Positions 12,701-62,190 of a stretch of DNA of 64,000 nucleotides are shown here, in pieces (position 1 is the stretch's first letter; every line of letters starts with the position of its first letter). The stretch covers positions 32,407-96,406 of the forward strand of contig NW_015162547.1 in the NCBI RefSeq assembly GCF_001447785.1, given 5' to 3'. Source of the stretch: Gekko japonicus. Lineage: Eukaryota. The position numbers were made by a program, and so were the translations under genes. Below the pieces are notes generated by a model. It searched no databases, was not told the DNA's origin, and saw only the letters and a program-made list of their open reading frames with translations.

Positions 12701-15700
12701 CCTTCGGACCTCCCCCCACTGGGCCTTCAAAGCATGTATCCACCCCCCCCGTCAGAGGCTTCAGAATCTCGGCAAGCCCGTCTTTCCCTCGAGCACTCGA
12801 GGCACCCCCACAACCAGCACTCCAGCAGAACCCGCCTCGGCTGATGCCAGGAGCTGCCGTTACTGTGCCATGACAAAGATTCTCAAGACCACAAACACTT
12901 CTTTTGGGGAAGGACAAACGCTCCTGTACGGGAACGAATCTCAGAGGAAAAGGCCCAGAGCCCTCCACTAACAACAGCCTCACCAGGGTGACGCCTCCCA
13001 ACCCCCTGCCTCCCAGCACAGCCACTTGTGCCCAAACGAAGCCAAGCCCACCAGCACACGGTGGAAGAGAGAGAAGCTCCCACCTGTGAGACTTTGCTGT
13101 CCCTTTCCCTGATTTTGTCCTTCACGAGCTTTATTAAGGATGTGATGTTGTAGAATTCAGCTTCTTCCAGAACCCCTAGAAATACAAGCAGAAGGCACAA
13201 GAGAGACTGTAATGAGTAACTCTGCCTTCCACCCCCCAGATGCCGCCCTCGGTCCTCCGTCTAAAGAGGTGGCCTGGGGTCAGGCCAGTTGGCAGAGTGT
13301 GTGCCAGATCAGGTCAGTGGCCTGTGTAATCCAGCACCGCCTGCTCTGACTGGAACTGAACCTGGAACCAGCGGCCAGCCCCACCAGTCCCACACACAGC
13401 AAAAGCCAAGGTCCCCTGGTGACCATCTGCAAGCTTTTTGGATGGCTGCAATAACAGCACAGCAACTCTATAGAGTGAAGACTTGGTTGGTAAGGAATCG
13501 CTCATGGCCAGGGAACTCAGACCTGGAGGTCCTCGTCATACGTTGCAGAGTAATACCAGCCCAGGCAGTCGTGGGATTGTTCTGCAGCAGATGGGGGAAA
13601 CTCATGACCTCCACAATATCAGCGGAGCGCAGAACTTGGCTGACAGTGGTATGAAACATTAGACCAATTGCTCTGCACGGTAGAAGACAACAGAAAGTAC
13701 CTTCCTCGGCAAGGTCTTTGTTGATTACCAGCTTCCCGTGTCGGAGATAGTTCAACACTGGTCCAAAGTAGGTTGGATCCCGGTCTATCAAATAGGCACC
13801 TGTTTCGTCCTGTGAACGAGATCGGAAATCAGAGCGAGGGACTCTTTGCCCCTCCCTCTCTTCCCAGCAGCATTCCAGGGCTAAGTGGCCGCCAGCAAGG
13901 ACTTCCTCCATCCCAAGACGTTCTGACAGGGCAGCGGCTGCCACAAGAACCACAGTGAACATGAGGAAGTGTGGCTTTGGTTTAAGCATCTAATCAAGGG
14001 ACTAAAGAGCTCCTTGGCCACGGTCCCGTCTCTAGCTGAGCTCCTCATGTGGGTGAGGCAAGCAGATTATGATAGCCCCTGGCCTCCGGTGGGGGATTAC
14101 CCTGCGGAGCTCAGCCTTGGCCACTCAGGACAGTCTTATTCAGTCAAGGAGGAATCTTCTGGAGGATAAATCTGGTATTGCACTCAAATAAAATAAAATA
14201 CTCTTTGACCAAAAGAGGTGAGCAACAGAGAGCCTACCCCCCACTACAGGCCTTAGTAACAGTCAGACCTTGTAGACCCTATATGGAGCCTCCAGGACTG
14301 GCATCAGTTTCACTCAAAACACAGGGTTCATTTCCTCATCTACAGACCCCACCTTAAGAAACAAGGAATGTGGAGTGCATGAGACAGAAACCAAGATCTG
14401 AGGCACAGACCCTTGTGATTCTCACCAGTCGCAGTGAGCATCCCTGACAGTTACTGGCGTGACAAAATATATGGTTCTGCTATCCCTTGTCGCAGAGCTA
14501 CCACTCTGAAGCATAGATCCTCATTGTTTTTACACAAAACCCACCAACGCTGATGTGCCATAATATGTGCCAGGGACTAGAATATAAAAACCATGGATTG
14601 AGCGCCTCAGGGCATCACTGGGCAAGAAATCAAGAACCAAGATGTGGAGTCGAGATCCAAGATATGGATGTCCATGGTGCCTTATGATTTTGACCAGCAG
14701 ATGCTCAACAAGTAATGAACACAAATGTGCTTAATTATGCAGGAATGGCACATGCCCCCTGATCAAAAGGTTAAACCTCTTCACCGCAGCTAGAATTGTG
14801 CTTGCAAGATTCTGGAAAACTCAACCTTTGCCTAACAGGCGAAGGTGAGTTTTAAGAAGTTGGGACACAGTGACAATGGTAAAGATGATGGATAACAACC
14901 CACAAAATACATAAGGCGACATCTTCCCCTCTTCCCAAACATTGTAAACACCACCCAATTGTTCTTAACCCTGAAAACCTTTCTGGGGGGCCCTCTGATG
15001 ATGCGTTAATGTAGTTAGAAGAAGAAGAGATCAGATTCATACCCCATGGCCCTTCACTACCTGAAGGAGTCCCAGAGTGGCTTACAAACTCCTTTCCCTT
15101 CCCCTCCCCACCACAGGCACCCTGGAAGGCAGGTGGGGCTGAGAGAGCTCTGACAGAAACTGCTCTTTTTTCAAGGACAGCTCTTATCAGAACTAGGGCT
15201 TGCCCAAGGTCATCCAGCCAGTCTGGCAAGTGGAGGAGTGGGGAATAAAACCTGGTTCTCCCAGATCAGAGTCCGCGCACTTCACCACGACACCAAACTG
15301 GCTCTCTAGTTAGTGATGCAGTATTCCACAAAGGGTGGAAAAGTTGTCCCACTGAAGGAGATTTTAACTTTTTCCCATTTGGGGGCTGTGTGGCCAACTC
15401 GGTTGCTGTTAAGTAGGCTCAGAAAGAGTTCTAAATCTGCAAAGGCAGATCGCCCAACAGATGAACTCTTCGAACCAGGGCTAGACCTGACAGCCCAGCC
15501 TTTTCGCCAGCAAACTGAACTACCAGTTCCCAAAACGGGTCGCATTCTTAAGCACATCCACTAAATATTGGGGGGGGGGAGAATCCACTTTCCAACAGCG
15601 GCCCCTCCTCCCCCTCCCCGCGTCCCTAGATGCAGCGCGGGGGTGGGGGGCTGCACGGAGGGGAGCAACGCTTCGGCGCGGCTCTCAACGCGCACAGGGC

Positions 15701-18832: not shown

Positions 18833-19412
18833 CAGTGTTCCCCCTCCTCTAGGTTGAGTTTAGTGTGAGCTGGCTCACAGTTTTTCAGCCTCTGGGGCTC
18901 ACACATTTTCGTCTTAGCTCAGGAAGGGAGGGCTCCTAATGCAGTAGCCAAATCGCTCACTCACAGCTTTAATGCCAGTAAGGTAAAGGTAAAGGTTCCC
19001 TTGCTCGAAAGCCAGTCGAATCCGACTCTAGGGTTGTGGTGCTCATCTCCGTTTCAAAGCCGAAGAGCCAGCGCTGTCCGAAGACATTTCCGTGGTCATG
19101 TGGCCAGCATGACTAAACACCAAGGCGCACGGAACGCTGTTGCCTTTCCACCAAAGTGGTACCTATTTGTCTACTTGCAATTTCTTGCTTTCAAACTGCT
19201 AGGTTGGCAGGAGCTGGAACTTGAGATGGGAGCTCACTTCGTAATGCGGCACACTCGGGTCTTGAACTGCTGAACTACCGAACTTCCACAGACTGTAGTT
19301 CAGCGTCTTAACCATTTGAGCCACCGCAGCTCCTCTTAATGCCAGTAGTAGCTCACAAAAGAGCATTTTTGCTCACAAGACTCTCCACAGCTGCTTAGAG
19401 GGAGTTCCATTG
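18833..19412. mobile_element. hAT-type MITE interrupted by a Sauria SINE
   Basis: CAGTGTTCCC...GAGGGAGTTCCATTG ends, perfect 8-bp TSD CACAGAAC (18825-18832, 19413-19420). Confidence 0.82.
18981..19335 (-). mobile_element. Sauria (Squam1-type) SINE, near full length
   Basis: (ACCTTT)n tail, GTCATGTGGCCAGCATGAC core, tRNA-like head; 12-bp TSD TTAATGCCAGTA (18969-18980, 19336-19347). Confidence 0.85.
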
Positions 19413-24000: not shown

Positions 24001-27000
24001 GATATTCCACCCTCCNNNNNNNNNNNNNNNNNNNNNNNNNNNNNNNNNNNNNNNNNNNNNCGCTCTTCCCCCCACAGGACGGGAGGGCCAGCCACTCCCA
24101 CCCCAAGGGGCTCACCAGGGGTTTCCACCAGCCTGCTTTGCCAACAGCAGCCTTTTCTCTTCTTCGGAGAACTGGAGGTCCAGCTCAAAGGAATTGTTGT
24201 CGAGGTCATGAATGTATTGCTCTATGTTGTTGCCGGAGGCAGGCGGTGGGCATGGCTCCGGGGCAGACAGCGACTGGGAGGAGGTGGAGCCGGACACTTG
24301 CAGGCAGCCAAACTGACTCAGGAGATTGTCATACTGCAAAACACACCAGAGGTCACCCTCCTTTCACCCACATGCGCAAAGATGTCTTCTCAACCTCTTG
24401 GTTTTCAGACCCTTCGGACTCGGAGCAAGAGAGAGCGCCGCTTCCCGCCTGGCACCCCCTGGAGAGACGCTCTCCCCTCCCTCCCACCAAGGGCACCAGG
24501 GAGAGAGGGAGGCTGAGGAGTCAGGGCTCCTCTCCAAGGAAGCAGAGGGAGGGAGGGACCCAGGGAGGCAGCCTCCGTGCTCAAAACCGAGAGGCGGCCA
24601 AGTCAGCACACACTGCAGAGGAACGCCCCCTGGCCGCTGCCACTCGCGACCTCTCGCCTGCCTCTGCGGGAGAGGACCCACCTCCGGGTCAACACCAGGA
24701 CTTACGTTTCCGTAGCAGTCTTCATCGTCCTCGGACATTGCAGGCAAATATGCCGTTAGTTTGGGGGGCGTCTGGTGATGCAGATTCTCCCAGGTAATGG
24801 AATCGAAGAACGGGTGGGCCTTCAGGGGTTCATACCCGCCCACTTCTTCACAGCCAAGCCTCTTGGTCGCCTCTAGAACCTGGACAAAGTTGCCAGGGAC
24901 AGGACTGAGGAAACGCGCCACACCAAAAGGTGGCAATCCAGCCAGGGTCTGGGCAACCGTTGCCAACCTGAAGCCCATTACATTTCTCCCCCAGGGAACC
25001 AGACCAGGAGTGTCCCTGTACCACGAGGTTTTCAACTAAGGAATGGCTCCCAGTGCGGCAGACTCTGAAATGGCTGGCTTGTTTTCAACCATTTTATCTG
25101 CTCTTTGTATCTAACGCTGCCTCCAGAAGGTCCAGGGCAAAGCACACCGCCTTCCCCTCCCCTCACAGGAGTTCTCGCAACAACCCTGGATGGAGCGGCG
25201 TCTCCCAGGTCTTAGTCCGACATCATAGCCACTGCCCCACAAGGGCTCTGAGAACCTTCCTCAAGGTCTGGAAGGGGTCAGGCTGTGGCTGCTGGGCGGG
25301 GGGGGGGGGGGGACAGGGGTACTACAGAGAAGGAGACCCAAGGGCACTGGCTGGAAAGCAGGAACCCGAGGGAGCAAAGCGGAGAAAAGGGCAGGCCAGC
25401 TTCACAGAAGAAGAAGAAGAAGGAGAGACTGGGTTTCTACCCCACCCTTCCCTCGGAGTCTCAGAGTGGCTTACAATCGCCTTCCCTTCCTCTCCCCACA
25501 ACAACGAGGCAGGTGGGGCTGAGAGAACAGCTCCGAGAGAGCTGTGACTGACCCAGGGTCACCCAGCCGGCTGCATGTGGAGGAGGAGGGGGGGAATCAA
25601 ACCCAGGTCCTCCCAGATTAGAGTCCGCCGCTCTTTACCACTAGCCCAAACACTAGCCCTAGAGGGAAAGGGCCAACTGGGCTTCCTCTGGCCTTTGCTG
25701 AATGATGACCTGAGCCCAAAAGCACAGTGGCTGGAAGCTAAATACTTCTAGTAATCATGAAACATCTGTGACAATGGGGGGAAAAATCATTTACCAAAAG
25801 CTTTTCTACGAGATCTTTTGCCTTGGGAAAGAACTTCTCTGGGAATTCGTACTCCAATTTGATTATCTTTTGAAATGTAAGGTACTCATTTCCGGCTCGG
25901 AATGGTGGCAGCCCCGCCACCAGCTGATAGATGATGCAGCCGAGGGCCCACAGATCTATTTGCACAAACAATCTCCTTTCATAAGCCAGCCTGATGGTTT
26001 TATGTATATGCATTTGTGTGTCTTTATATATAAGGAGAGAGATACATACAGAAGTTAAGCTCCTCTGGGGAAAGAAGCAAGACAGACAAAGAGCAGGAGA
26101 CATAAAGTATTAACCAGAAGGATGAGTAACCAAACAGAGAAGGAAGCAAGCCACCCCGCATTCTTCCCTAAAGGAAATTCAAACTGTATGTTGTGGGGAG
26201 GATTAAAAGGCTGTTACACTGAAATAGGCAATAAGAAGCAGCCAGTACACAAAAAGTTGACAGCAGGTTCTTGCTGATGGAAAATAAATAACTGAGACGG
26301 CATCAGTAAAGAACTTTAATATTAAAGCACAGAAGAGGACAGAGAGAAGCCAAAGGAGAGACAGAGAGGACAAATGATGCTTCTTTAAGTGCACTCATAA
26401 CCGGATTTCCTTGTATGCAAACACAGAAAGAAAAGCAGAGCCACTTTAAAGGAGAGACATTCTTGCAAATGGCCCTAACTGGCAGGTGGAATCGGGACCA
26501 AAAGTTGTCAAAGACAGACTGGGATTGTGGAAATCAGACTTACTCCAATACCCTCCTTACTGGCAAGAAGCGGGTAAAAAGTTCCACCATATTGGATGAC
26601 TGGATCCTATTAATACCCTGGAGAGTCAGGGACAAAATGAGAGGAGGCCTGCCTACTCACAAACCCCCTACAGCTTCAGGGCCATGCGATAATGAATTGG
26701 ACCAAGATGGATGTACAGTTTATCCCAAACTTGTAAGAAACGAGGACTTTATAATATGCCACGGGACTGGAAAGAATAAGAACATAAACCAGTTTCCGGG
26801 AGTCACAGAAGACGGCACCCTCACAATCTGAATTTCTCATTTCTCAAGGCATTTCTCAAGGGACTAGTTAAGGGGATCCTGACTGAGGGGCATTAACACA
26901 AACAGGTGGTGCTTCTTGGCACAGATTGTTGGTCTTGTGTTACGGATACAGTAAATGAATAGCCCAGCCTCTGAACTTCATCCCATTTCGTACACAACTG

Positions 27001-30000
27001 GACTATCATAAAGTACTTAGAAATGCATTTGGAATAACCACCTTGTAAGCGATATCTATACAAGGCTTATAGATCATCCAAGACCTCGGATGACGGTTCC
27101 AGAATTAGTTGGAAACCTGCTCAGTGCAAGACTGCTGGTGAACGTCAACACACGTTTAAAACCTCTAGGGCACAGATAATTATTACTGCAAATTTATTTG
27201 CAGTATGTGTGTATTTTTTATATATGTGTGTGTGTATACACACACACACACACATATATATAAATATATATATAAATATATATAATAAATAAAAATAAAA
27301 ATTGGGTCACAATTTATATCTACTGACTTATTTGAAAAGAGTAATTCTAAGGAACCTGAAACATTTCTGCTTCATGTGTCAGTGGCAGCTAGAACGCTTT
27401 CTGCAAAAAAGGGGGAGGAGAATTATATTCTATATTTGACACAAGGGTTTTTTCAGCTTGGGGTTCTTACAGTGGGTCAGATTGTACCGTACAGTTGTGT
27501 TACCAGCCCTAAAAACGACCGGAGTGCTAGAAGCACAAGAGCACGGCCGTATCTGCTCCTCACCACCATGAGCAGGTTGAACGCTAAGCTTTGCATCCGC
27601 TGTATCCCTACAAGAGGACAGGATAACTTTCCGACAGCAAAAGGGAACTTTCCTCCCTCTCTCCCCACCACTTCAGCTGTGCCCCACAAAATGCTGCTGC
27701 TGGTGCTGCTTCTAGGAGACTGGCGGCGTCTGGAGCAGCATGAGAAGTGAACTGGGGAGGGTCTACAGTGTGTGTGTGTGTGTGTTGGGGGGGGGAGAGA
27801 CCAGCGAACAACCCTGCTGGTAGAAAAGTACTGCTGGAGCTGATGCAACAGCTTGCAGACCCCATGAAGGACGTCTGTGTGTGAGTGTGTGCATGTGTGT
27901 GAGTGCATGCACATGGCACATGCTTCCGTCCTGCCCACACTGGGAAGGAAGACGGGCGTGAAGAAAGTGCCACCTGTGAGCCAGCCAGCTCTCGTGGCAG
28001 GACCGTGAGGGGAAGCGGCAGGATCGTGAGGCTTCCAGGCATGACTGGCTGAGGCTGGAAGGCAGGCCTGCTGCCCTCCAACGACCCCAGTGTTAGTGAG
28101 AAGGGGATCATACTGGCACACGTTTGCAGCTGGGTGGGACCACCGCCCCCCCAAGAAGGCATCGGTGCAAAAAGCGGCTACTCACCCTGGGGGCCTTGAC
28201 GCCAGGCTGTCTTTGGAAATCCTTTTTCGTGCCCTTCACAGCCACATGAAGTGGCTCGGGAGACTGGACACGTCGCAGTTCATTAAGTTAGGACTGTTAC
28301 AAACCCCACCTCGTTTTCTCCAGGGAGTTCCCCTCATCATTCTTTATGGCAAGAAAGAACCGTTCCTCGGCCAGCCTCGAGGGCCGCACAGAGCCAGTCC
28401 ATATTCACTTACAGCCTGACTATCATCCACGGAGTTTAAAAAACCCCACAAGCACCAGGAAACGGACAAAATGCGGCGGCACCCGAAGTCTCTTACCCGG
28501 CTCGAAATGGTGGCAGCCCCGCCACCAGCTGGTAGATGATGCAGCCGAGGGCCCACAGATCCGAACTTCACCGAGACACGGAAGAGGACGAAACAAGGGA
28601 GAGAAACAGGGAGAAAGCAGGAGACCATGAGCTCCGAGCAGGAGAGCCAGGCTTGGCAACGGTTGACTTCAGCCCCTGCCGTTCACGAGGACCAAGAGAA
28701 AGGCTCTGAGCCACAAGGCATAGACTCTGGGGCAAGGGATGCTCTGTGTCCTTGGTGCTTGGGGGGAGGGAGCAACAGTGGGAGGGCTCCTGGTGTCCTG
28801 GCCCCGCTGGTGGACCTCCTGGTGGCCCCTGGGATTTCTGGCCACCGTGTGACACAGAAGAGTGTTGGACTGGATGGGCCATCGGCCTGATCCAGCGTTG
28901 GCTTCTCTTGCGTTATGTTTAAAGGGAACTCCCGGGTGTGCTGCGGCCACCTGTGGTTCCAACCAAGGGAAGCCTGAGCTGGATCTCCCTCTCCTCCACT
29001 GAGCACGGCCTCCAGACAGGTGAGGCAGCACCCGAGGACTTCGGCCACACTGCCCGTGAGTCGAAGAGACTGAAGAGCATTTCAAGGGTATTTCAGAGAA
29101 GGAGCCGCCGTGCAGGTGGGCGTAAGAAGACTACAGCTCTGGTGGCAAGGAGCTTTCCAGACCGTCATAGCTTTTTGGCTTAATATCTAGCCTGGTCAAA
29201 GACCAAAGAAATGCCAACATTCACGTGATATCCTCCAGCCTGGGAACAACTTGCGTTCATCAGCATTTGGATCTTAACACCTTTGGGTTCTACAAACTCA
29301 AGGAAAAAGTCTACACAAATCACAGGTTTCACTGGAGGGCCTAATGCTGGTGGAAGCATTTCAGTGGAGACACCCAAGAGCGCTTCAGGGCACGAGGTCC
29401 TCAGCCACGGAAACAGCTGATAAGTGGAGGTTGCTGGAGATGCGACCCCCCCCCCCCGGCTCTGCTTCACACAAGCCCCTCTAGAGTCTCATCACCAGTT
29501 GCTCACCTCTTGCAGGCCGACTTCTCTGTTAACAGCTCCGGAGACACGTACTGTGCTGTCCCGACAAAGGAGTTTGCCCGTGCTGGAAGAAGACGTCGAG
29601 AGCTGAGCCTCGGGTCTTCCAAAGGCTTTAAAGGCCCTACTGAAGAATTGCTGGGCAGCTTGCAAACAGGCAGTTCAAAGCCATTTCTATATTTAACCCG
29701 CTGAGAATACTGTACAGCCAAGCACAATCCCCCTCCCCCCCCCGCCCTTCGGCCAAACCTTTTCCCCTCTCTGCCTGTGCCCACCAATGGCTCTGGGGGG
29801 TTCCAACTGGCCCTATAGCTTGGTTGGAAGTGTGATCACCCAAGCTCTCAGGCTTCACTTTATGCTGACTAAACTCGCTTCAATTTTCCACTGTAAAGAG
29901 TCCGAGGACAATCCACACCGATCCTACTGAGATTGTCATCACCGGATACTTTAAGGTGACGGACTGCAACCGGAGGGCCCACAGGCCCAGAAGGAGGCGC

Positions 30001-33000
30001 TGGAGGCGTTTGCAGGACAACACCTGAAGAGGGGCCGTACCTTGTTTACTGTCCGCAGATAACACTTTTGCTGTCCCAAAGTCCGTGATCTGAATGTGCA
30101 TCTCCCCACTGAGCAAGATGTTCTCCGGCTTTAGGTCCCTGTGAAAGGCAAAGTGGGTTTAAACCAGGCCTGCCCCACATGAAGCTGGCTGCAGCTCTTT
30201 CCCCGCCCTGGGATAGCCCCCAAGCCCCCACCCCCCTTCACGTCCTTGTGGGAACAACAACGCAGGTCTCTTCCTGCCGCAGCTGCAGCAGGAGGGGAGC
30301 CCCCGCAGCACGGCTCCTCCCCACGCCAACGGGAGCTCAGAGGCATGGTGGGAAGAGGCCCGCCTCCCAGTCTCGCCTCCAATGAGAATGGCCCTCGGAA
30401 GGGATCTCGTGGGGCTCCTCCCACCCGGTCCAGGGCTTCTTGCATGACCCTGGCAACGGCCGTCCGTGTCTGCCACAGCAGCAGCCCCCACGTCACCCGG
30501 ACAACATGAGGAGGGGACTCCAGCAGTGTTCCCTCTAAGCTTAGAGTTAGTGCGAGCCGGCTCACAGTTTTTTAGCCTCCAGCTCACACATTTTTCTGTC
30601 TTAGCTCAGGAAGGATGGGGCTCCAGAGCAAGCTAATTTATGCAGGAGCCAAATCACTCGCTCATAATTTTCATGCCAGCTGCTCAGAAAGTAGAGTTTT
30701 TGCACACAAGGCTCCACAGCTTGGGGGGGCGCACTGGTCTCCAGGCCAACCTGGGGCCCTTCAAAACAGGGACGGGGGTGGGATAATGCTGCCCTCCCAG
30801 AAGCTGGGGGGGGGGGGTGTTTCAGCGGACACTCATGAAAGCTGAGATGGGACAGTGCAGGTTCTCGGGAAGAACATCACCCGTCCCACGCATAAATCGG
30901 TACTGCTTCTGAGGGGGACAATCAGTGGCGGGGCAGTGAAGTCTTAACAGGCACCAGGATTTTTGTTTCCATGGAAGCTGGAGCCCCCCCGAAGCACCAT
31001 CCACACTGGAGCACAACATTCTGCAACAGTCATAGCAACATGCACCAGAAATGACACGAATTCGAATTCATAACCTTACCTGTGAATAATTCCCTTCCCA
31101 TGCAAATACTCTAATGCAGACACAATTTCAGCAGTATAAAACCTGGTACAGGTCTCATCAAAGGAGCCAATCTTGCGGATATATTTTAAGAGTTCTCCAT
31201 TTTTGGCATAGCTAAGGCCAAAGTCTGAAGCCAGCGTTAAGGACTCTTAGCAAACCTGCAGAAAATGGACAGGCCCTCAGACTGGAGAGCAGTACGGCAG
31301 ATGTTAAGTGCCAAAGGTAAAAGCCAAGAAAGCTTTTGATAAAGTTCCACAGACTTCCAGAAAGCTTTTGATAAAGCTCCTCCTCAAAGGTTCCTCAGTA
31401 GTCATGGGATATGAGGACAAGCCCTCTTGTGGATTAAAAACGGGATAATTAACAGGAAACAGAGAGCATAAATGGGCAGTTTTCACAGTGGAGGGCGGTA
31501 AGCAGTGAGCCACCGCAGGGCTCAGTACTGGGTCTGGTGCTTTTTTACTTGATCATTAATGATTTGGAGTTGGGAGTAAGCAGTGAACTGGCTAAGTTGG
31601 CGGATGACATCAAGTTGTTCAGGGTGGTGAGAACCAGGGAGGATTGCGAGGTGCTCCAGAGGGATCTGTCGAGGCCGGGCAAGTGGATGTCAACATGGCA
31701 AATGAGGTTCAACATGGGCAACTGCAAAGTAATGCACACTGGAGTCAAAAATCCTAACTTAAATACACATGAATGGGGTCCAAATTGGTGGAGACTGACC
31801 AGGAGAGAGATCCTGTTGTTGTAGTAGATAACTCACTGAAAATATCAACTCAGTGTACAATGGTAATAAAAAAGGCAAATGCTGTGCCGGGGATTGTTAG
31901 GAAGGGAACTGAAACCAAATCAGCCAGTATCATAATGCCCCTCTATAAGTCTATGGTGCGGCCTCATTTGGAGTACTGTGTGCAGTTCTGGTCACCGCAC
32001 CTCAAAAAGATATTATAGCATTGGGAAAAGTGCAGAAAGGGACAACTAAAATGATTAAATGGATGGAACACTTTCCCAACGGAGAAGTTAAAGAGGTTAG
32101 GGCTCTTTAGCTTGGAGAAACATCAACTGAGGGTGGTGACACGATAGAATTTTACAAAATTATGCATGAGATAGAGCAGGTAGAGAAAGAAGTACTTTTC
32201 TCCCTTTATCACAATACAAGTACTGGTGGGCACTCAATGAAATTAATGAGCACTAGGTTTAGAACGGATAAGAGGAAGTAGTTCTTCACCCAAAGAGTAA
32301 TGAACACGTGAAATTCACTGCCACAGGAGGTGGTGGCGGCTACAAGCATTAACAGCTTCAAGTGGGGATTAGATAAACATATGGAACAGAGGTCCATCGG
32401 TGGCCATTAGCCGCAAGGTCTAGATGGAATGGAATGTCTGGGACAGGGATGCTCTGTATCCTTGGTAACTGGGGAGGCGACAGTGGGAGGGCTTCTGGAG
32501 TTCTGGCCCCACTGGTGGACCTCCTGACAGCAGCTGTTTTTGGCCACTTAGCGTTGGACTGGATGGACCACTGGCCTGATCCAGCATGGCTTCTCTTATG
32601 TTCTTATCCTTTGCTACATGCTGAGTTCATAAGATCCAGCCCTAGAAGGCATTTTGCATCCACGGCCCAAATCAAAAACACCAAAGTGATTACAAAAACA
32701 GGTGTGCAATAGCACACCAAAGAATGCATGTGTCTGCCCTTGTGTCTTGTTCCAGAATATATTACAAATATAAACTGTATTTCCTCCAAGTAGCATTGAT
32801 TCAAAGGATACAGAGTTTCTCGTCATCCTGAAACGTGAAGTAGAGCTTGACAAAGAAAGGGTGATCCAGGCGCGACATCACATCTCTCTCCCGGGTCACG
32901 TAGGGCACCTTGTTCTCTTTTATGATATGACGTTTCTCCAGAATTTTAACTTGTAAAAAGACAGAGAAGTTACAGCTGACTATGGAGAAAACTCAGGGGG

Positions 33001-36476: not shown

Positions 36477-39400
36477 TAGGGATGTGCATTTCGGGACCCC
36501 GAGCCGAAAAAAAAGCCGAAAATAACGATTTTCGGCTTTTTTCGGCTTTTGGGATCCCGAATTAGCCATTTATGAGCTTGTCCGAATCCCGAAAAAAAAT
36601 CCCGAAAAATTCGGGTCCATTATAACCAATGGGGCCATTGAAGTCAATGGCAAAAATCCTCTTGAAACTTTGTGGGGGGCTGGGGGGGAGGGGGTTTGGG
36701 GTAGAGGCTCCAAACTTGGAGCGTGCTTACTGGAACCTCTCCCCAACATACCCACCAAGTTTCAAGACGATTGGACCAGGGGGTACAATTTTATGGGCCC
36801 CCAAACAGGTTGCCCCCAGATCAGCTTGCTGCAGTTTATTCGCGGTTTGCCGCCGAAATTCGGCGGCAATTCGGCAACATTGTATCCTATGGACCTTGGA
36901 GTGGGTAAGCTCCAAACTTGGAGGGTGGTTACTAGAACCTCTCCCCTACATACCCACCAAGTTTCATGAAGATTGGACCAGGGGGTCCAATTCTATGGGC
37001 CCCCAAACAGGTTGCCCCCATCCCATTGTTCTCTATGGTGGGAAAAAAATTACTTTTTTTCCCACCATAGAGAACAATGGAGGGATGGGGGCAAACTGTT
37101 TGGGGGAGTGTGCTGCGTGTTGCAATTTCAAACTGTACATTGCCAGACCAGCCAGCCACACTGCAGCAGAACCATACAAGTGCCCCCCCACCTGCGCTAC
37201 CAAACTGGGTGCCCAAAACCCCAAAACTACAACTTAGCTCAAACCAAAGAATCTCTCTACAGTAGCAGCAGCACTAGCATGTGCATTGTGCCAGACAGGC
37301 CCAGCAGAAGAAACAACCAGAGCAATCTGCCACCTGTGCCAGGCCAGCCAGGTTGCCAATTGCCAGTCAGTGCCCCAAAACCAGAACTAGGTCAAACCAG
37401 AGAATCTTTCAAGACAGCAGCAGCAGCCACTAGCCCACTACAGGGAGCAAGTGCATGCCAGCCAGGCCCCAGCAGCAGAAGAACCAGAGCAATCTGCCAC
37501 CTGTGCCAGGCCAGCCAGGTTGCCAATTGCCAGTCAGTGCCCCAAAACCAGAACTAGGTCAAACCAGAGAATCTCTCCAGACAGCAGCAGCAGCCACTAC
37601 AGACTGAGGGAGCAAGTGCATGCCAGCCAGCCAGGCCCAGCAGCAGAAGAACCAGAGCAATCTGCCACCTGTGCCAGGCCAGCCAGGTTGCCATGCCAGT
37701 CAGTGCCCCAAAACCAGAACTAGGTCAAACCAGAGAATCTCTCCAGACTGCACTGGAGCGGCAGCACACAGGCTGAGGGAGCATGTATGTGCATCGCCAA
37801 TGCCAATGCCAGCCAGCCAGGCCCAGCAGCAGAACCAGTCCACCACAAGTGTGCCAATGTGCCAGTGCCCAAAAAACCCCAAAAGCAAAACAATCTCTCC
37901 CCTCTGCAGTGGCAGCGGCCTACATAGGGGAGCATGTTTGCTAATCGCAGCCATGCCCAGCTGCAGAACCAGAGCAATCTCAACTTCCCCCCATCAACCT
38001 CTGTGCCCAGCAATGCAGGAGATTCACACAGAGACGTCTCCCTTACAACCCCAGAGGCCCAGAGGCCCCTCCTCCATGACCAGAAGCGCTATTTGCCTAG
38101 CCTGCTTTGGAAATCCAAAGGTGGGCTGCCGAGAGGCTGAAAAGGAGTTGGGAACTTGGGAGTCGGGCTTGGTCCCCTGTTCAGGGCAGGGGACAGCAGC
38201 AGAACCTGTGCACTGCACGCCCCTCCCCCAACCACACCCAGCCCGCCTGCTCCATGGCCAGGAGAGACTGTAAGGAGAGATGACTACTAGTCCGCTCCGC
38301 TTTGGAAATCCAAAGGTGGCCACTGGCCACAGGCTAAAAAAGGATTGTTACCATTGACCAACCCCCCACTCTCAACAATTTGCCCAAAACCTCCTGCATT
38401 GCTGGGAACGGGGCGGGGAGACCCACAAGCCAGCCGCTGTGTGGCTCGGGATGTTTTTGCCTGCCTGCCCCTGCCCGGTGGGGGTGGAGCTATCTTACTT
38501 CCTTGCTGCCACCTTCCTAGAGGTAGCATACGTGGGACCCCTCTGGATGATTCCCCAACCTGGGAATCATCCTATCTCAATCTTTGGGCACCACCTGGAG
38601 AGTTGGCAGCCACTCTAATTTGGGGGCATCTGGGTTCCTCTGGCCTCCCTTTGCCTCTCTTCAGGTGCGCTGAGTGGGGATTCGCACGCACACCCCTAGT
38701 GATTGCTCACGTCACTTGCACAGGCCCTGCCTGCCCCCCCCTTCATTTATACTGCAGAAATCCTCAGGTTTGGACTGAGTCCAGTAAGTTGGGTGACTGG
38801 CACAGAGGTTGTTGGGGGGAAGTTGAGATTGCTCTGGTTCTGCAGCTGGGCATGGCTGCCATTAGCAAACATGCTCCCCTATGTAGGCCGCTGCCACTGC
38901 AGAGGGGAGAGATTGTTTTGCTTTTGGGGTTTTTTGGGCACTGGCACATTGGCACACTTGTGGTGGACTGGTTCTGCTGCTGGGCCTGGCTGGCTGGCAT
39001 TGGCATTGGCGATGCACATACATGCTCCCTCAGCCTGTGTGCTGCCGCTCCAGTGCAGTCTGGAGAGATTCTCTGGTTTGACCTAGTTCTGGTTTTGGGG
39101 CACTGACTGGCATGGCAACCTGGCTGGCCTGGCACAGGTGGCAGATTGCTCTTGTTCTTCTGTTGCAATGCTGGGGCCTGGCTGGCATGCACTTGCTTGC
39201 TCCCTCAGTCTGTGGGCTGCTGCTGCTGTCTGCAGAAATTCTCTGGTTTGCACCAAGTTGGTCTGGGCACTGATTGGTTGCACCTTGGCACAGGTTGTGG
39301 GGGGGGCAGATTGCTCTGGTCCTGCTGCTGGGCCTGTCTGTCTGGCATTGGTAATGCACAGACATGCTACCTCAGTGCTGCTGCTGTAGAGAGATTGTGG

Positions 39401-48279: not shown

Positions 48280-51200
48280 CTGAAACGGACCAGAAGCCAG
48301 TCAGGGAGGCGTGGCTGCCGCACACCCGCTCACTCTGACCACTGCGCCCCCCTCTCCTCCCTCTGGGCAGATTCACGGGTGGCCGGTGGTGGGGGTGCCC
48401 CTTCCTCTCCCTCCTAGCTGGTATGCCTAGAGGCGGACGTTGCCACGGCAACCCCACCAGCTTCCTTCTGGGTCCGGGAGGGGGGGGGCCCCTGCAGCCT
48501 GGACCCACCGATGCCCGGCTCCCCTCCTTTCGCTTTCAGGGCCGCAGGAGAAGGCAGGAAGTCTCCAAGGAGAGGGTGGGGAACGGGAGGCAGAGCCGGG
48601 ACCCCTGAGGTCAACAAAATATTTTTTTGTGTGTGTGGGGGGGGTCATTGTCTTCTTCACCTGCTAATTCTCCTTTCCCCATCTGGGATGGGAGGGAGGA
48701 GACGGATGAGGGTGCAGTGGGAGTGGGAGTGGGGGCGGGAGGGTAGGAGAGGAGGGGAGGCGGGGGGGGCGGAGAAGGCCTTGAGGAGAGGGAGGGCAGG
48801 CTGCGGCCACAGGGAGGGGGGGCCACACCTGGGCGGGTGGGCAGCCGGGAGGGGCCCTCGGGACTCTGCCCCCCNNNNNNNNNNNNNNNNNNNNNNNNNN
48901 NNNNNNNNNNNNNNNNNNNNNNNNNNNNGCGCGCCCCCCCCCAAGCCCCGGCGGGGGGGGGGGGGGGGGGAGAGAGCAACGTTGTGGCCGCCTGCTCTGG
49001 CTCACCTTCTGCTCTGTTTGGCCTTCCCCCTTCCTGCTCCCCCCTAAGCCCCTTCCCCTCCCTCCCAGAAGCAATGGGGGCGGGGGGGGGGCGGGAAGAC
49101 AGGCCTCTTACCTGGAAGTCCCCGTTGTGAGAGGCGTAGAGGGGCAGGAAGAAGGCCGCGGGGTTGGGGGTGCTGGCCGAGCAACGGCTCTTGATCCTGG
49201 GGGGAGACAGAAGGGCAGGACCTCCTGAGGGGGCACCGGGTGTCTCTGGCCACTGCGTGACCCAGAGGGGTTGGGCTGGAGGGGGGCCGCTGGCCTGACC
49301 CAGCGCGTGGGCTTCTCTCTCTCTCTCTCGTGTTCTTCATGTTCTTCTGGTCACTTCCTGGGTCAGCAGCAGCCCCTACGAGGCGCCCGTCTCCCCTGAA
49401 TGCCCAGGCAGGGTGCCAGCTGTCTGCACTTTTGCCCGCTGGTGAGCCTGTGCAGAGGCAGGGGAGGGTTCCCTCTCCATGCACCCCCATCCTCCCCACC
49501 ACCACCACCAGGCGCCCTCTGTTTCCCTAAAGGGGCTCACGAGCAAGGAGCGCCTCCCTCACCCTGTGCTGACCGCCCCGCTGATGAGGGGGAAGCCCCA
49601 ACACGGAATGGCCTGGCGGTGGGTGGTCAGCCCCATACCCTGCGGCACCCTACCTCGGGTAGAAGCCGGCGAGCAGGAGGAGAAACAGCAGGGCGCCAAG
49701 GAGGCAGAGAGGGACGGAGGCGAGGAGGAGGGCCGGCAGCACCAGAGACTCCTCCCTCCGCAGCAGAGGCCCTGGGGAGCAGACAGAGTCATCATCCATC
49801 GGCGCATCCCTCAGCAGGCTCAGGGCTGCCTCCCCGGTGCCGGATGGACGCGGCCCCGGTCCGTCTACGCTCCGGGAGGGCCCCTCCCTCGAGTGCCAGG
49901 GCCCCTCCCTCGGGTGCGCCTTTCCAGCTGAGGGGGATGAGCAAGGCGACTGGGGGAGGGGGGGTGAGGGGCTGCAGGCAGCCTCAGTGCTGGGACTGTG
50001 ATGTAGCTGGGTGCGTCACCTGCCTGGGCTCTAGGGAATGGGCTCCATACCCGCACGGGGGCAGCGTGAGGGGAGTGTGTGTGGGTGAGGGGGTGCCTGG
50101 TGCTGAGGGGCTGGGCTGAGCACCCCCACCGGGCCATCTGGCCAGCGGACTGGGCCAGACCTGGGGGCACGCTCCACTCGGTCTCGCTGCTCCACTCGCT
50201 CCACTGGCTGCCGTACTGCTTCTTGCGGTCGGGGGTTTTGCAGCGCACTCTGGCAACGTAGCTGGCGCCTGGCGCGAACTCGGAGCCGTCTATTTCCATC
50301 GACGTTTCTCTGGTGTCCACGGTCTTGTTCTCTGCTTGCTGTTCAAGGGTGGGGAAGAAGGAAGGTGGGTTGAGGCCGGGGAGACACACGGCCCAGTCTG
50401 TCACCCTGGGGGTCAAGGCACTGGGCAGGCGGACTCCTGGGCAGAGATGGACCAGAGACAGGCCCCGTGGGGCATCATTGGCCAGGCGGCCGCATCCAGC
50501 GCCTCCCCCCCCCCAGCCTCTCCTCACCTCCCAGGGGACGGGGGCGGCCCTGAACTGCAGCTGCCACTGCATGTCCTTCCAGATGTCCACGTAGGCCTCT
50601 GGCATCTTCCACTCGATCAGGCACTTGCTGCCGCTCATGTTGCTCCGGAGGCCGTAGGGCGGATCGCATTTAACTGGAAAGAGGGCTGCCTGGTTGAGAG
50701 GAGAGGCCCGGGGCTCTCCCGGAGCACCCACCAAGGAGGAGCCGCCCGCCCGGGAGAGTGCGTTTCCCGCTGCTAGTCCTCTCCGTCTCTTGCAGCCCCG
50801 AAGGGTCTGGAGCAAGGCTCCCTCTTAGCTGTGGAGTCTTGTGAGCAAAAACCCTACTTTGTGAGCTACTGAGCATTAAAGTGGTAAGCGAGCGATTTGG
50901 CTCCTGCATAGATTACTTTGCTCTGGAGCCTTCCTCCCTTGGGCTAAGGGGAAAATGGGTGAGCCGGAGGCTCAAAACCTGTGAGCTAGCCCACACTAGC
51001 TCAGCTTAGAGGGAACACTGGTCTGGGCGCCCATTCATGGGACCCACGTACCCCTCCCACAAGACGCCTGCCAGTCGACTGAGTGGCTTTCTAAGCCCCG
51101 CTTGGTTTTTAGGGAGGGAGGCTGCGCTGGCTCTTTGTGGATGCCTGGTGGGCTGCCTGGGGATGAATGGGGGAAGGTGGCCTCTGCCGTTTTGAAACCA

Positions 51201-57231: not shown

Positions 57232-60200
57232 CTGTACTCAGGGAGAGGGGGAGAGAGGGAGGGAGAGGATGGGACCAGGGAGCCCAGAGGCAGAGGCAGC
57301 GCCCCCCACCCCTGGGCTCAGGGCGGCTTACAAGAGGGCACAGAGCCCATGCATAAAAACAAGATAAAACAATAAAACCATTCAATAACAGCAAAAGCAG
57401 AAATAAAGTGCTCCATGAAAAGAAGATGGTCTCCGAATAATTTCATGGTAGCATCGGTCATTTCCTGGGGGGTGATATTGTCCTGTAGGTGGTCCAAGGC
57501 TCGTCCAGCGGTACTGGTGCCACGCAGTATTATGGCCGATCTTCCGAGGGCCGCCCCTGGCCCCGTTGTTGCCCACGCCATGGGTGGCTGGCTTGGCAGT
57601 CTACCTTGCTGGGGTCTCGTGCCCTCGCGTAGGGGGCATTTAGTTTTTAAGGCTGCTTTTCCTTTACAGAGGGGGCACTTTGGTATCAGCCAGCCGTTGG
57701 CTTCGGCAGCAGGGAGGGGGTTTCTTGCCTCACACACAAAGGGCTCCCCAGAATGCCCTGCGAAATGCACGGCTCCCGGGTGCTGGGCTGGACTGGCACT
57801 GCTGAATTCGTGGGTGCCTTTGGGGAGAGGCAGCCGGCAGCCGGCAGCCGGCAGCCGGGAGTCCCTCTCTCTTGGGGAGTCTTTTGTGCTGCCTCTAATG
57901 GCAGACGGTCTCCCTCCACAGAAAGCGTCCCCCCCCCCCCTCCAGCATCTGGCCATTTGGGTCCCCCTGCCTCCATCAAGGAAACTGGGTTTCAGGGAAA
58001 CCACCTAACGGGACTGCTTTAATTATGCAACCCAAGCCCTGCCCCCCCCTCTGGAATTGGGTGCCTTTTCCTGTTAGGCAGACGCTTCCCTCCTTCAGGG
58101 TCGCTCCCCCCAAAAAAACCCCCCAAAATCGTAAAACAAACTCCAGAGTCCCGGGGGGGGGGGGAGAGAGAGAGAGAGAGAGCTCTTTCTGGGGTGGGGC
58201 TGCTACTGTCAAAGGTTTCCCCACCCTCCATCTCTGCCCCCAGCCTCCTGGTGCACTGTGAACTCCTCCCCCCCCCCTCATGGGGCAGTGCCTGGCTTCT
58301 CTGTGGCTCCAGTCCTCCTCCTCCTCCTCGTCTGGCCCCTCTGGGGCGGCAGGCAGCCTCAGCTGGTGTCTTCCCTTTGCTTGTTTGTCTCTTTCCCCCC
58401 CAGAGGCCTTGGGGGGGGGGCTCCCCTCCCTCCCTCCCTCCCTGTGCCCTCCCCTTCCCCTTCCCANNNNNNNNNNNNNNNNNNNNNNNNNNNNNNNNNN
58501 NNNNNNNNNNNNNNNNNNNNNNNNNNNNNNNNNNNNNNNNNNNNNNNNNNNNNNNNNNNNNNNNNNNNNNNNNNNNNNNNNNNNNNNNNNNNNNNNNNNN
58601 NNNNNNNNNNNNNNNNNNNNNNNNNNNNNNNNNNNNNNNNNNNNNNNNNNNNNNNNNNNNNGGGGGGGGAGGACAGGCTGGCCTACCCTGGCAGAGGAAG
58701 GGGGAGCGGAAAGGCAGGTGCGGCCGGCAGGGGCTCAGGGCAGTTGGCGAGGCCTGGCGGGAGGAAGGGGCCCTCTCCTGGCCCTTCCTCCCGGACTGAC
58801 CGGAGCGAGAGTCTTGGGGGGCCGGCCGGCCCTTCTTCTTCTAAGCAGGGACCGAGCCAGGCATGGCTGACCCCCCCCACTCACCTCGGGTGCTTGCACA
58901 GGAAGGCCACCAGGGTGACAATGAGGCTGAAGGCCAGAAGAGGCGCCACCGCCCACACCGCTCCTCCTCCTCCTCCTCCTGCGCTGCCTGAGGAAGGAAG
59001 GAAAGAAGGAAGATAGAGAGAAGGAAGGAAGGAAGAAGAGAGAGTGTTGTGGGGGGGGGGACGCAGGGAGGAGGTGTGGGGCAGAAGGAGAGAGAAGAGG
59101 AGGAGATTGGATTTCTACCCCGCCTTTCACTACCCGAAGGAGTCTCAGAGCGGCTGACAAACTCCTTTCCCTTCCCCTCCCCACAACAGACACCCTGGGA
59201 GGTAGGTGGGGCTGAGAGAGCTCTTCTTGAGAAGACTGCACTTGAGATAACAGCTCTGAGAGAACTTGTGACTGACCCAAGGTCACACCAGCAGCTGCCT
59301 ATAGAGATGTGGGGAATCAAACCCGGTTCTCCCAGATTAGAGTCCGCACACTTAACCACGACACCAACCTGACTACGCCAAACTGGCAGGGATCCTGGTT
59401 GGCGGCGGCTGCAGGGGCGTCTTTCTTTGGGCAGCCCGGGCAGCACAGCCACCAGAGCAGCCCCGGACGGCACTTACCCCTGGGGGGAGTCCTGAGGCGG
59501 CCGGCGGGGCCCCAGTCGCTCCACGTGCCCTTGTACAGGGAGTGGTCCCTCGGCCCGGCTCGCACCTGCAGCTCGTACTCCGCGCCCCCCTTCAGCTCCT
59601 GCGGCAGCAGCCACAATGTCGGGGTGTCCTGCAAGACGGGCTTCGGGGCCTGGCCGGGTGAGAAGGGGGAGGCAGGAGGGCTCAGCTCGGGCGGGGCTCC
59701 CCTCAGGACCACCCCTGGCTCTGGGGGTCGGGGGGGGGGGAAGTGGGCAGGCAGCCTGCCGGGATTTTACGGGTCCCTCTCAGCTGCGGAGTCTTGTGAG
59801 CAAACATTCTATGTTGTGAGCTCCTGGCATGAAAGCTGTGAGGGAGCCATTTGGCTGCTGCATCCATCAGTTTGCTCTGGAGCCCCCTCCTTCCTGAGCT
59901 AAGGCAAAAATGAGTGAGCCAGAGGCTGAAAAACTGTGAGCAGGCTCACAACAACTTAGCTTAGAGGGAACACCGGTCTGGACCACCAGGAGCTGCAAAG
60001 AGACCTGTCTGCCTTGGGACTGGAAGTGCCAGTAAAGCTCAGAAGGACTTCAAGCCCGCCACGGCCGGTGGACGGCTCAAGGCCCCCCCCCCCACACCCA
60101 TCTGCTGGGGCGTTGCTGAGACTGGCTCTGGGGCCCAGGCGGGTTGTGGGGGGGGGCCACACATGAGGGTTGCCTCTTTCAGAGCCCACGTGGTGGCAGC

Positions 60201-62190
60201 ACCAGCTTAGTTTCTCGCTAGAGGCTGCTGTGGAGCACAGCCGGGCTAGAGGGGCACCTCTGTAACATCTGCCAGTCTTGGGAGTGGGGCGGGCGGCGGG
60301 CTGTCCCTTCCCCCTCGGCCACAAATGAGGAGTCTCTGTGGCTCTTTGGCAGAGAGGAGAGAGAGGTGTGCGCTTCCCTTCCCGTCACAGGGGCCAAATG
60401 CCCTGATGGGAGCCGTAGGAGCACAGGTGCGCCACGTGTGGCCGTGGCCCCGCCCAGACCCTTTGCTCCCAGCATGTGTCCCCCCCACCCACCTGCACCC
60501 CTCAGACTCACCCCGGCCGTGCCTCCCTCCGCATTCCAGGGGTGGCCCTTCTGTCGGTAGCGCAGCTGGTACTGCATCTCCCCGTGCAGGTAGTCGTAGG
60601 CTGCGTAGCCGCTCTCCCAGGAGACGTTGTAGCCGTCTGGGTGGGCCACGGCAGTCACTTTGGAAGGGGGCGGAGGCTTAACTGGGGAGGAGGGGGGCAG
60701 AGCTATAATCAAGGCCGGGCCCCTGAGGAGCCCCCGCCCGGAACCCCCCCCCCCCGCGCGCACACCCTTCCTCCAAAGGGGAGCGAGGCGGGCACGGCCC
60801 CTTCCCTTGGCGACTTCAGCTGCAGAGCGAACAAGAGGCTGAATGGGGGGGTTGAGACACACCTGTGGCAGCGTCCTCTTCACCACCGGCAAAATGGGGC
60901 CATGGAGGCCAAGCGCAGCCATGCCAGGGGATCCCTCCAGCTGGGGTCTCCCACCGGACCGCTGTCAGAAGAGCTCGGGGAGGGGTGCACCCCTGCCCAG
61001 CTTCTGAGGGGGTGCTCCTGGGTCTTCCTCTCTGCCTCCCTCACTTTCCAGCACAGAGGGTGCCCCCCGCCCCCCCCCCCCCGAGGAGCCTTCCCAGTGC
61101 CCTGCCCCCCCCCGCCGACCATGCACACTTACCGTTCTCGTGGCACCGGAAGGGCCCACAGTCCTGGTGAGCGGGAGGGGCTCCACCCACGAGCATCGTG
61201 ACCCTCACGGCAAAGGTGTCACGAGAGAAGCACGGCCTCTGCTCCGAGGAGCAGGCGTAGCGCAGGTGGCTGGCATTTCTGAAGGTGGGGAGGAAGGCGC
61301 AGGTGCACCCGTGGCCACAGCCCCTGGGGAAACAAAGGCAAGACAGGCGTCTCTCGGCATGGCAGGCAGCCATCGCTGTGCAAGTGCCCCGCAGTCGGTC
61401 CCAGAGCACTGATGGGCAGAAGGTGCCCCTCTTCCCCGGAGCAGGTCCCACGGAGGACTTCCAGGGTGTGCACGCCCCCGGGGCCGGGGCCGGTGGCGAA
61501 GGCACCGAGTGGCCCAGTTGTCAGGCAGATCAGAAGCCCCTGACTTGACTGCAAGGTTCCCTCTCCTTTCCCCTCCCCCCTCCCCAGAGCGGGGCAGTTC
61601 ACATCCCGAGCAGAAGATAACTGCTCTGGTCTCAAAACGGGCCACGGGCAGTGGGAGGCCCTGCGCGGCTCCAGGTTGCTTCGGCTGGGGGAGGGGAGGG
61701 GAGGGGGTGTCTCCTTGGAGGACAGAGGGGAAGTCCTCTTGGCAAGAGAGGCCACGATTCGGGGCCCAGGGGATGCTGGATGCCGGCTCCCGTCCCGACC
61801 AGCGTTCCCTCTAAGCTGAGTTGGTGTCAGCTAGCTCACAGTTTTTTAGCGTCTGGCTCACACATCTTTGTCTTTGCTCAGGAAGGAAGGAAGGAGGGGG
61901 CTCCAGAGCAGACTAATTTATGCAGAGCAGACTAATTTAGGCCAGTAGCTCACAAAGCAGGATTTTTGCTCACAAGACTCCACGGCTTAGAGGGAGCATG
62001 GCTCCGGACCCTACAAGGAAAGGAACAAGGAAAGGCACCAGAGACGACACCCCCCCCCCCCCCCCGGGCACCTACCACGTGGCAGTGAGGTTGTGCAGCC
62101 TCCCTCTGGGGTGGCCGGGGCCCGTGTCCCACATGCAGGTCAGTGTCCGGATGTAGTCCGCAAAACACCTGAGATCCTTGCAAGCCGAGT
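56494..62190 (-). CDS. IL21R: Interleukin-21 receptor, partial (Box1 exon probably in gap 58466-58661; signal exon not identified)
   Basis: Exons 62076-62190, 61133-61323, 60512-60681, 59478-59649, 58885-58987, 56494-57231. Diagnostic tail motifs YGHLSIDTVTVAD, LDLDTVDSGFADSDCGSPV.C.F and SYVKQWV; D1 start CKDLRCFADYIRTLTC. Confidence 0.9.
58885..58987 (-). CDS. IL21R: IL21R transmembrane exon
   Basis: cag|GSAGGGGGGAVWAVAPLLAFSLIVTLVAFLCKHP|gtgag. Confidence 0.82.
59092..59372 (-). mobile_element. tRNA-derived SINE
   Basis: Same family as 15017-15305. Confidence 0.75.
59478..59649 (-). CDS. IL21R: IL21R WSXWS-type exon (WSDWG)
   Basis: cag|APKPVLQDTPTLWLLPQELKGGAEYELQVRAGPRDHSLYKGTWSDWGP...|gtaag; alternative in-frame acceptor at 59628. 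Confidence 0.88.
59770..59975 (-). mobile_element. hAT-type MITE, same family
   Basis: Reverse-complement copy ending gcttagagggaacaccg. Confidence 0.7.
60512..60681 (-). CDS. IL21R: IL21R D2 exon a
   Basis: cag|VKPPPPSKVTAVAHPDGYNVSWESGY...LHGEMQYQLRYRQKGHPW...G|gtgag. Confidence 0.9.
61133..61323 (-). CDS. IL21R: IL21R D1 exon b
   Basis: cag|GCGHGCTCAFLPTFRNASHLRYAC...DTFAVRVT...QDCGPFRCHEN|gtaag. Confidence 0.85.
61800..62000 (+). mobile_element. hAT-type MITE, same family
   Basis: cagcgttccctctaagctgag...gcttagagggagcatg. Confidence 0.72.
62076..62190 (-). CDS. IL21R: IL21R D1 exon a
   Basis: cag|SACKDLRCFADYIRTLTCMWDTG...HNLTATW|gtagg. Confidence 0.88.

Follow-up and report, generated by a model that had tools for sequence, protein, structure and literature searches.

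The assembled PDPK1 locus of Gekko japonicus raises the question of how part of exon 8 came to be joined directly to exon 9 while intron 8 and the genuine exon 8 are both still present, so that the intron between the joined exons has not been deleted. In the window, which is the whole 64-kb stretch of DNA analysed here, minus-strand PDPK1 spans ~34100 to 20900, and its 13 coding exons (2-14) are recognisable, intact and highly conserved. The features at issue are given below, with a slash marking each border within a motif.

29507-29582, minus strand: PDPK1 exon 7, with the 3′ end ...AAGAG/gtgagc
28497-28565, minus strand: PDPK1 exon 8, genuine copy, 69 nt, ag/TTCGG...GCCGG/gtaaga, with its own acceptor gtgaag/ and its own donor /gtaaga
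25956-28496, minus strand: PDPK1 intron 8, ~2.5 kb, with the 3′ end ...gtttgtgcaaatag
25892-25955, minus strand: extra intron-less exon-8 block, corresponding to exon 8 bases 6-69
25795-25891, minus strand: PDPK1 exon 9, ending at the donor ...CTTTTG/gtaaat
24706-24879, minus strand: PDPK1 exon 10, ending ...DCYGN, with normal acceptor and donor
Left junction as assembled: ...gtgcaaatag/ATCTGTGGGC, from the end of intron 8 into the block
Block-free alternative junction: ...gtgcaaatag/AAATGAGTAC, from the end of intron 8 straight into exon 9

The acceptor of intron 8 is plausibly native, with a branch-point-like cttat ~26 nt upstream and then ttgtttgtgcaaatag. The genuine exon 8 stops at PFRAG, as do the exon-8 ORFs of other vertebrates.

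Alignment of the two copies bore out what the first-pass annotation had described, namely a 64-nt repeat of exon 8, from its 6th base to its 3′ end, joined directly to exon 9, a genuine exon 8 kept with its own splice sites, and two synonymous differences between the copies. The block lies between the intron-8 acceptor AG and exon 9, without an intron on the exon-9 side, and is identical to the last 64 nt of exon 8 at 62/64 positions, a match that cannot arise by chance in 64 kb. The two differences, TAC versus TAT (28532 in exon 8 and 25927 in the block) and TTT versus TTC (28505 and 25900), are both synonymous, an outcome with a 7-13% chance under neutrality, and the copies are 2605 nt apart. 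The G preceding the block, which is at once the last base of intron 8 and the 5th base of exon 8, is also common to both copies, and the block can equally be written as 25956-25893.

At its right junction, the block continues in perfect register into the gene's own exon 9, and together they recreate the mRNA junction PFRAG/NEYL (GCCGG/AAATGAG) in the assembled sequence. The ORF across the block aligned without gaps to human PDK1 from DLWALG to KLLV (E 2e-31), and the precise exon-exon junction is colinear with the human protein. Only the left junction has the look of end joining, with a 1-nt overlap. No poly(A), A run, target-site duplication or duplicated flank was found at the block (caaatag and AAATGAG flanks), the block is followed by neither a donor nor an intron and has no compatible frame of its own, and no other such repeat was found at any PDPK1 exon border in the 64-kb window.

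The 121-aa ORF across the block was used for a homologue search of vertebrate genomic contigs. In ~30 vertebrate genomic ORFs, intron-derived residues stand directly before NEYLIFQK, and in three vertebrate ORFs exon 8 closes with PFRAG and the gtaa donor then supplies a stop; no exon-8 copy before exon 9 was found among the ~30 vertebrate ORFs. The search gave no match from Gekko japonicus itself, and hence no independent copy of the locus. Some of its matches resemble primate or other mammalian sequence, one of them being chimpanzee. Judged by these ORFs, the intron at PFRAG/NEYL is taken to be old and common to vertebrates. With the intron present in ~30 vertebrate ORFs and absent at the block junction, the earlier statement that this junction requires a spliced, intron-less template holds. 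Two kinds of local duplication were considered and rejected. A tandem duplication or a new intron does not agree with an intron position common to vertebrates and a block without an intron of its own, and a tandem or mutually exclusive exon duplication would have no donor after the block and an acceptor in front of it that leads to a frameshift and a stop.

The same search bears on exon 9, for which a reading of NEYLT in place of human NEYLI had been pointed out, and both the human alignment and the vertebrate ORFs agree with that reading. The residue is a Thr encoded by ACA at 25878-25876 on the minus strand (exon 9 codon 5), whereas all vertebrate ORFs spanning it (~30 matches) have NEYLI and Thr was found there only in non-vertebrate PDK1 relatives. 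This Thr is probably a true lineage feature of PDPK1 lying outside the artefact proposed below, because it falls in a vertex shared by both branches of the assembly graph.

Reading the spliced frames showed what the block would do to the gene as assembled. With the natural caaatag/ as acceptor, transcripts spliced from exon 7 or from exon 8 lose the frame and meet a stop after 23 codons, and the AGs within the block (25923 and 25895) are out of frame as well. The nearby AGs that do keep the frame are the cryptic sites 25990, 25975 and 25972, which have weaker pyrimidine tracts and two of which lie within ~11 nt of the likely branch point cttat, in agreement with the first-pass annotation, which had splicing into the block out of frame and only weak AGs upstream to restore it. 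Further in-frame AGs lie ~100 nt upstream (26062 and 26059), directly after the out-of-frame AG at 26064. The in-frame cryptic routes would add residues before the kinase alpha-F helix or duplicate it. PDPK1 would be null as assembled, although every exon is intact. PDPK1 is essential in mice, and a gene that is null as assembled, yet essential and intact in 13 exons, favours a layout error in the assembly over a real null.

A separate observation in intron 8 is a strong pyrimidine tract at 26064-26100 (minus strand), ending ccccag/AG, ~110 nt upstream of the exon-9 acceptor. The reading frame of the block is open from 26109, and the tract could be a cryptic acceptor; its first AG leads to a stop after three codons.

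For the published draft of Gekko japonicus, blood DNA of one male was made into Illumina genomic libraries and assembled using SOAPdenovo v2.04 and SSPACE, gaps were filled via local assembly of read pairs, and RNA-seq was used for assessment and annotation only (PMC4673495). According to its supplement, reads were 'split into 29-mers', and 17-mers with ≤11 occurrences counted as low-frequency during error correction (PMC4673495). The leopard gecko short-read draft used 33-mers (PMC5080775). The window has 11 N runs, 13-853 nt long, which together with the gap-edge duplication described below would fit a short-read de Bruijn assembly. Counting the common G, the block and exon 8 are identical over at most 29 consecutive nt, a length measured before the assembler settings were read, and exactly one 29-mer thus separates the left end of the block from its first private variant. 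For two random differences, the chance that the first lies at exactly that place is 35/2016, or 1.7% (computed by hand).

The assembly graph was simulated with two sources, the gene as the locus without the block and a second, intron-less sequence carrying the block's two variants. The second source was modelled either with exon 7 and exon 10 flanks, as a retrocopy, or with the gene's own flanks, as an intron-less allele. At each odd K from 21 to 35 (eight values), the private edge of the second source across the exon 8-exon 9 junction was written as from-vertex plus edge minus to-vertex and inserted between the edge of intron 8 and the vertex of exon 9. At K = 29 alone, the private edge had 64 bases and equalled 25956-25893, and the window from 29700 to 24700 was rebuilt base for base; at K = 21, 23, 25, 27, 31, 33 and 35, the locus was not rebuilt. 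The two vertices that bound this edge at K = 29 are as follows.

28533-28561 in exon 8, minus strand: V1, the branching vertex, the 29-mer GATCTG...ATCTA, which is also block 25928-25956
G before exon 9 plus the first 28 nt of exon 9, minus strand: V2, the shared vertex

The fit with K-mer vertices is exact because V2 starts at the G, the intron and exon 8 both ending in G, and a K-1 overlap convention misses by one base. The exact fit depends on the contig convention of SOAPdenovo, in which the first K-mer is kept and the last K-mer is dropped. The borders of the block thus coincide with branching k-mers at K = 29, matching the 29-mer draft if the window comes from that draft. The repeat pairs in the window were too few to show a general K = 29 signature elsewhere.

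These results make it likely that the 64-nt block is a false insertion, produced when two branches of a K = 29 de Bruijn graph were laid out in series. The genomic reads would have held two sequences entering exon 9, the real gene, in which intron 8 leads into exon 9, and an intron-less PDPK1 with two synonymous differences from the exon 8 of the gene. At K = 29, both sequences would share V1 in exon 8 and rejoin at V2, and the intron-less path from V1 to V2 would form a private edge of 64 bases. The scaffolder would then have kept both branches, placing the intron-8 edge first, the private edge second and exon 9 last, and presumably no read would span the resulting left junction caaatag/ATCTG. 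In the simulation, the ends and the length of the block equal this private edge exactly, and do so at K = 29 only. On the left, the intron is complete down to its final base and its acceptor AG is intact; a graph branch point predicts such an intact left flank and a random break does not. A branch-point border falls at the splice junction because contigs end where the gene and the intron-less copy become identical. The first-pass annotation had preferred an artefact over a frozen intermediate of intron loss, and the fit of the K = 29 edge supports that preference. A mate-pair chimera (libraries of 2 kb and up) was rejected as a separate route, as it could give the left junction but not the exact right mRNA junction or the variants.

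The same junctions bear on a real insertion, the frozen intermediate of the first-pass annotation, which would be a PDPK1 null allele made by one-sided repair at the exon-9 acceptor on spliced RNA, cDNA or a retrocopy, with synthesis running 64 nt into exon 8 sequence followed by end joining to the intron at 1-nt microhomology. The need for a spliced template, the 1-nt microhomology at the left junction and the single affected junction, as one event predicts, are in line with such a repair, and a null allele would be tolerated in a heterozygote. RNA-templated break repair with precise intron deletions has been documented in human cells (PMC12065846), and class 2 templated insertion polymorphisms are patches of cDNA found at breaks (PMC5110952). 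However, the break would have to fall exactly at the last base of the intron with the AG kept, which a random break would seldom achieve, and the first difference would have to lie by chance exactly one 29-mer from the left end (the 1.7% event computed above), matching the assembler's K. A recent event copied from the gene's own mRNA would not be expected to carry two differences in 64 nt, an old null allele would not be expected to survive in an essential gene whose exons are all intact, and poly(A) and a target-site duplication are absent. A real insertion is thus very unlikely.

Highly improbable, and the last in rank of the readings weighed here, is an origin from RNA-seq or cDNA reads that entered via polishing, gap filling or library contamination, with their exon-8 overhang written at the exon-9 border. 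Soft-clipped spliced reads would be expected to stop at an exon border and 64 nt is less than one read length, and RNA-seq of the species existed at the time of the draft (PMC4673495). Against this, provided that the window comes from the published draft, assembly and gap filling used genomic libraries only according to the published method, and any rare RNA-derived k-mers would have met an error correction in which 17-mers seen ≤11 times counted as low-frequency (PMC4673495). mRNA of the same species would not be expected to differ from the animal's own exon 8 at two positions in 64 nt, and overhang polishing leaves the K = 29-tied start of the block unexplained. The suggestion of the first-pass annotation that RNA-seq reads were incorporated during polishing or gap filling was therefore not upheld, given a published method based on genomic Illumina reads only, the two differences in 64 nt and the K = 29 shape of the edge.

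If the block is a graph edge, as we prefer, the intron-less reads must have had a source. The most likely one is a young processed retrocopy or a cDNA fragment elsewhere in the genome, and the least likely is trace cDNA contamination, since the correction of low-frequency k-mers argues against trace material and for a sequence present at genomic depth. It counts against a retrocopy that it would also give private edges at exons 7/8 and 9/10, where none was laid, and no PDPK1 retrocopy was found in the ~2% of the genome scanned.

The single private edge also bears on a variant of the layout error in which the intron-less branch is a functional PDPK1 allele precisely lacking intron 8, for which the sequenced male was heterozygous. 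The graph would then be a simple bubble between V1 and V2 with both arms kept. A heterozygous whole-intron deletion predicts exactly one private edge, as seen, with no additional edges at exons 7/8 or 9/10, and its read pairs would be tied to the same flanks, making a serial layout natural. Both differences are synonymous, as in a working coding sequence (7-13% under neutrality), and assemblers are known to duplicate divergent alleles falsely (PMC2864568). On the other side, the prior for such an allele is very low compared with that for retrocopies, two SNPs within 36 nt are more than alleles would usually show, and the allele is indistinguishable here from a short retro-fragment elsewhere. 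To our knowledge, intron presence/absence polymorphism has been reported in no vertebrate gene. We consider an intron-8-less allele quite unlikely. Taken with the 64-nt insertion, an exon 8-exon 9 junction in germline DNA at the PDPK1 locus itself is unlikely, and of these two germline forms the intron-8-less allele fits the graph best.

Among known systems, the closest kind to a serial layout of two branches is false duplication, in which draft assemblies retain two diverged forms of a region, alleles or paralogues, in series (Kelley and Salzberg 2010, PMC2864568). There, as here, a slightly different second copy adjoins the first and resembles a recent duplication, its borders are set where identity ends, and the setting is a short-read draft with gaps. 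Unlike those cases, one path at PDPK1 is intron-less, the second copy is 2.6 kb away from the first and looks like the product of a cDNA-mediated event, and a single 64-base edge rather than a large region is involved. The signature of RNA-templated double-strand-break repair is a whole-intron deletion (Jalan et al. 2025, PMC12065846, citing yeast work). It shares with the block a precise exon-exon junction, derived from spliced RNA, at the gene's own locus, but at PDPK1 the intron is kept, the change consists only of 64 additional nt from the upstream exon, and the left border matches an assembler's k-mer rather than a repair product. Class 2 templated insertions (Onozawa and Aplan 2016, PMC5110952) are likewise short patches from transcribed sequence, with an intact donor, very little microhomology and neither poly(A) nor a target-site duplication. 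They land at unrelated sites and show end joining on both sides, whereas the PDPK1 block sits at its own splice junction in perfect register and has the look of end joining on the left side only. A processed pseudogene of a housekeeping gene is the likely kind of source for intron-less reads that join exon 8 to exon 9 and differ from the parent at a few sites, while the hallmarks of a retrocopy, as made by LINE-mediated retro-insertion (class 1 TSIP), are absent at the block site.

The reading chosen matters for what the locus can teach. As an artefact, the block means that the draft's PDPK1 model is falsely broken here and implies intron-less PDPK1 DNA somewhere in the animal's genome. It also offers a forensic rule, by which an odd duplicate is to be read as a graph edge and not as a mutation when exactly one assembler k-mer lies between its start and its first private variant. 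If real, the block would show mRNA-mediated intron loss caught at a natural intermediate stage in a vertebrate germ line, a stage so far only inferred or forced experimentally. If the intron-less allele were true, it would be an intron presence/absence polymorphism in an essential vertebrate gene, with both arms kept by the assembler.

Several other repeats were observed in the window. Positions 301-394 and 461-554 form a 94-nt direct duplication with 100% identity and copies 160 nt apart, extending to ~102 nt when one C/T difference is allowed and bounded by C and G homopolymers. The duplication (293-554) comes directly after the N run at 256-292 and has the appearance of a false duplication made at a gap edge in the draft. 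Upstream of PDPK1, satellite-like tandem arrays with periods of ~167 and 200 nt occupy 36700-37830 and 38830-39360 (D5, D7, D8, D10-D12). Dispersed repeats that are 60-93% alike (D9, D13, D17, D18, D20) are probably of SINE type, with one copy in PDPK1 intron 5; copies lie at 18860-18932, 30547-30619 and 61821-61893, at 50940-51033 and 59895-59988, and at 15049-15151 and 59122-59224.
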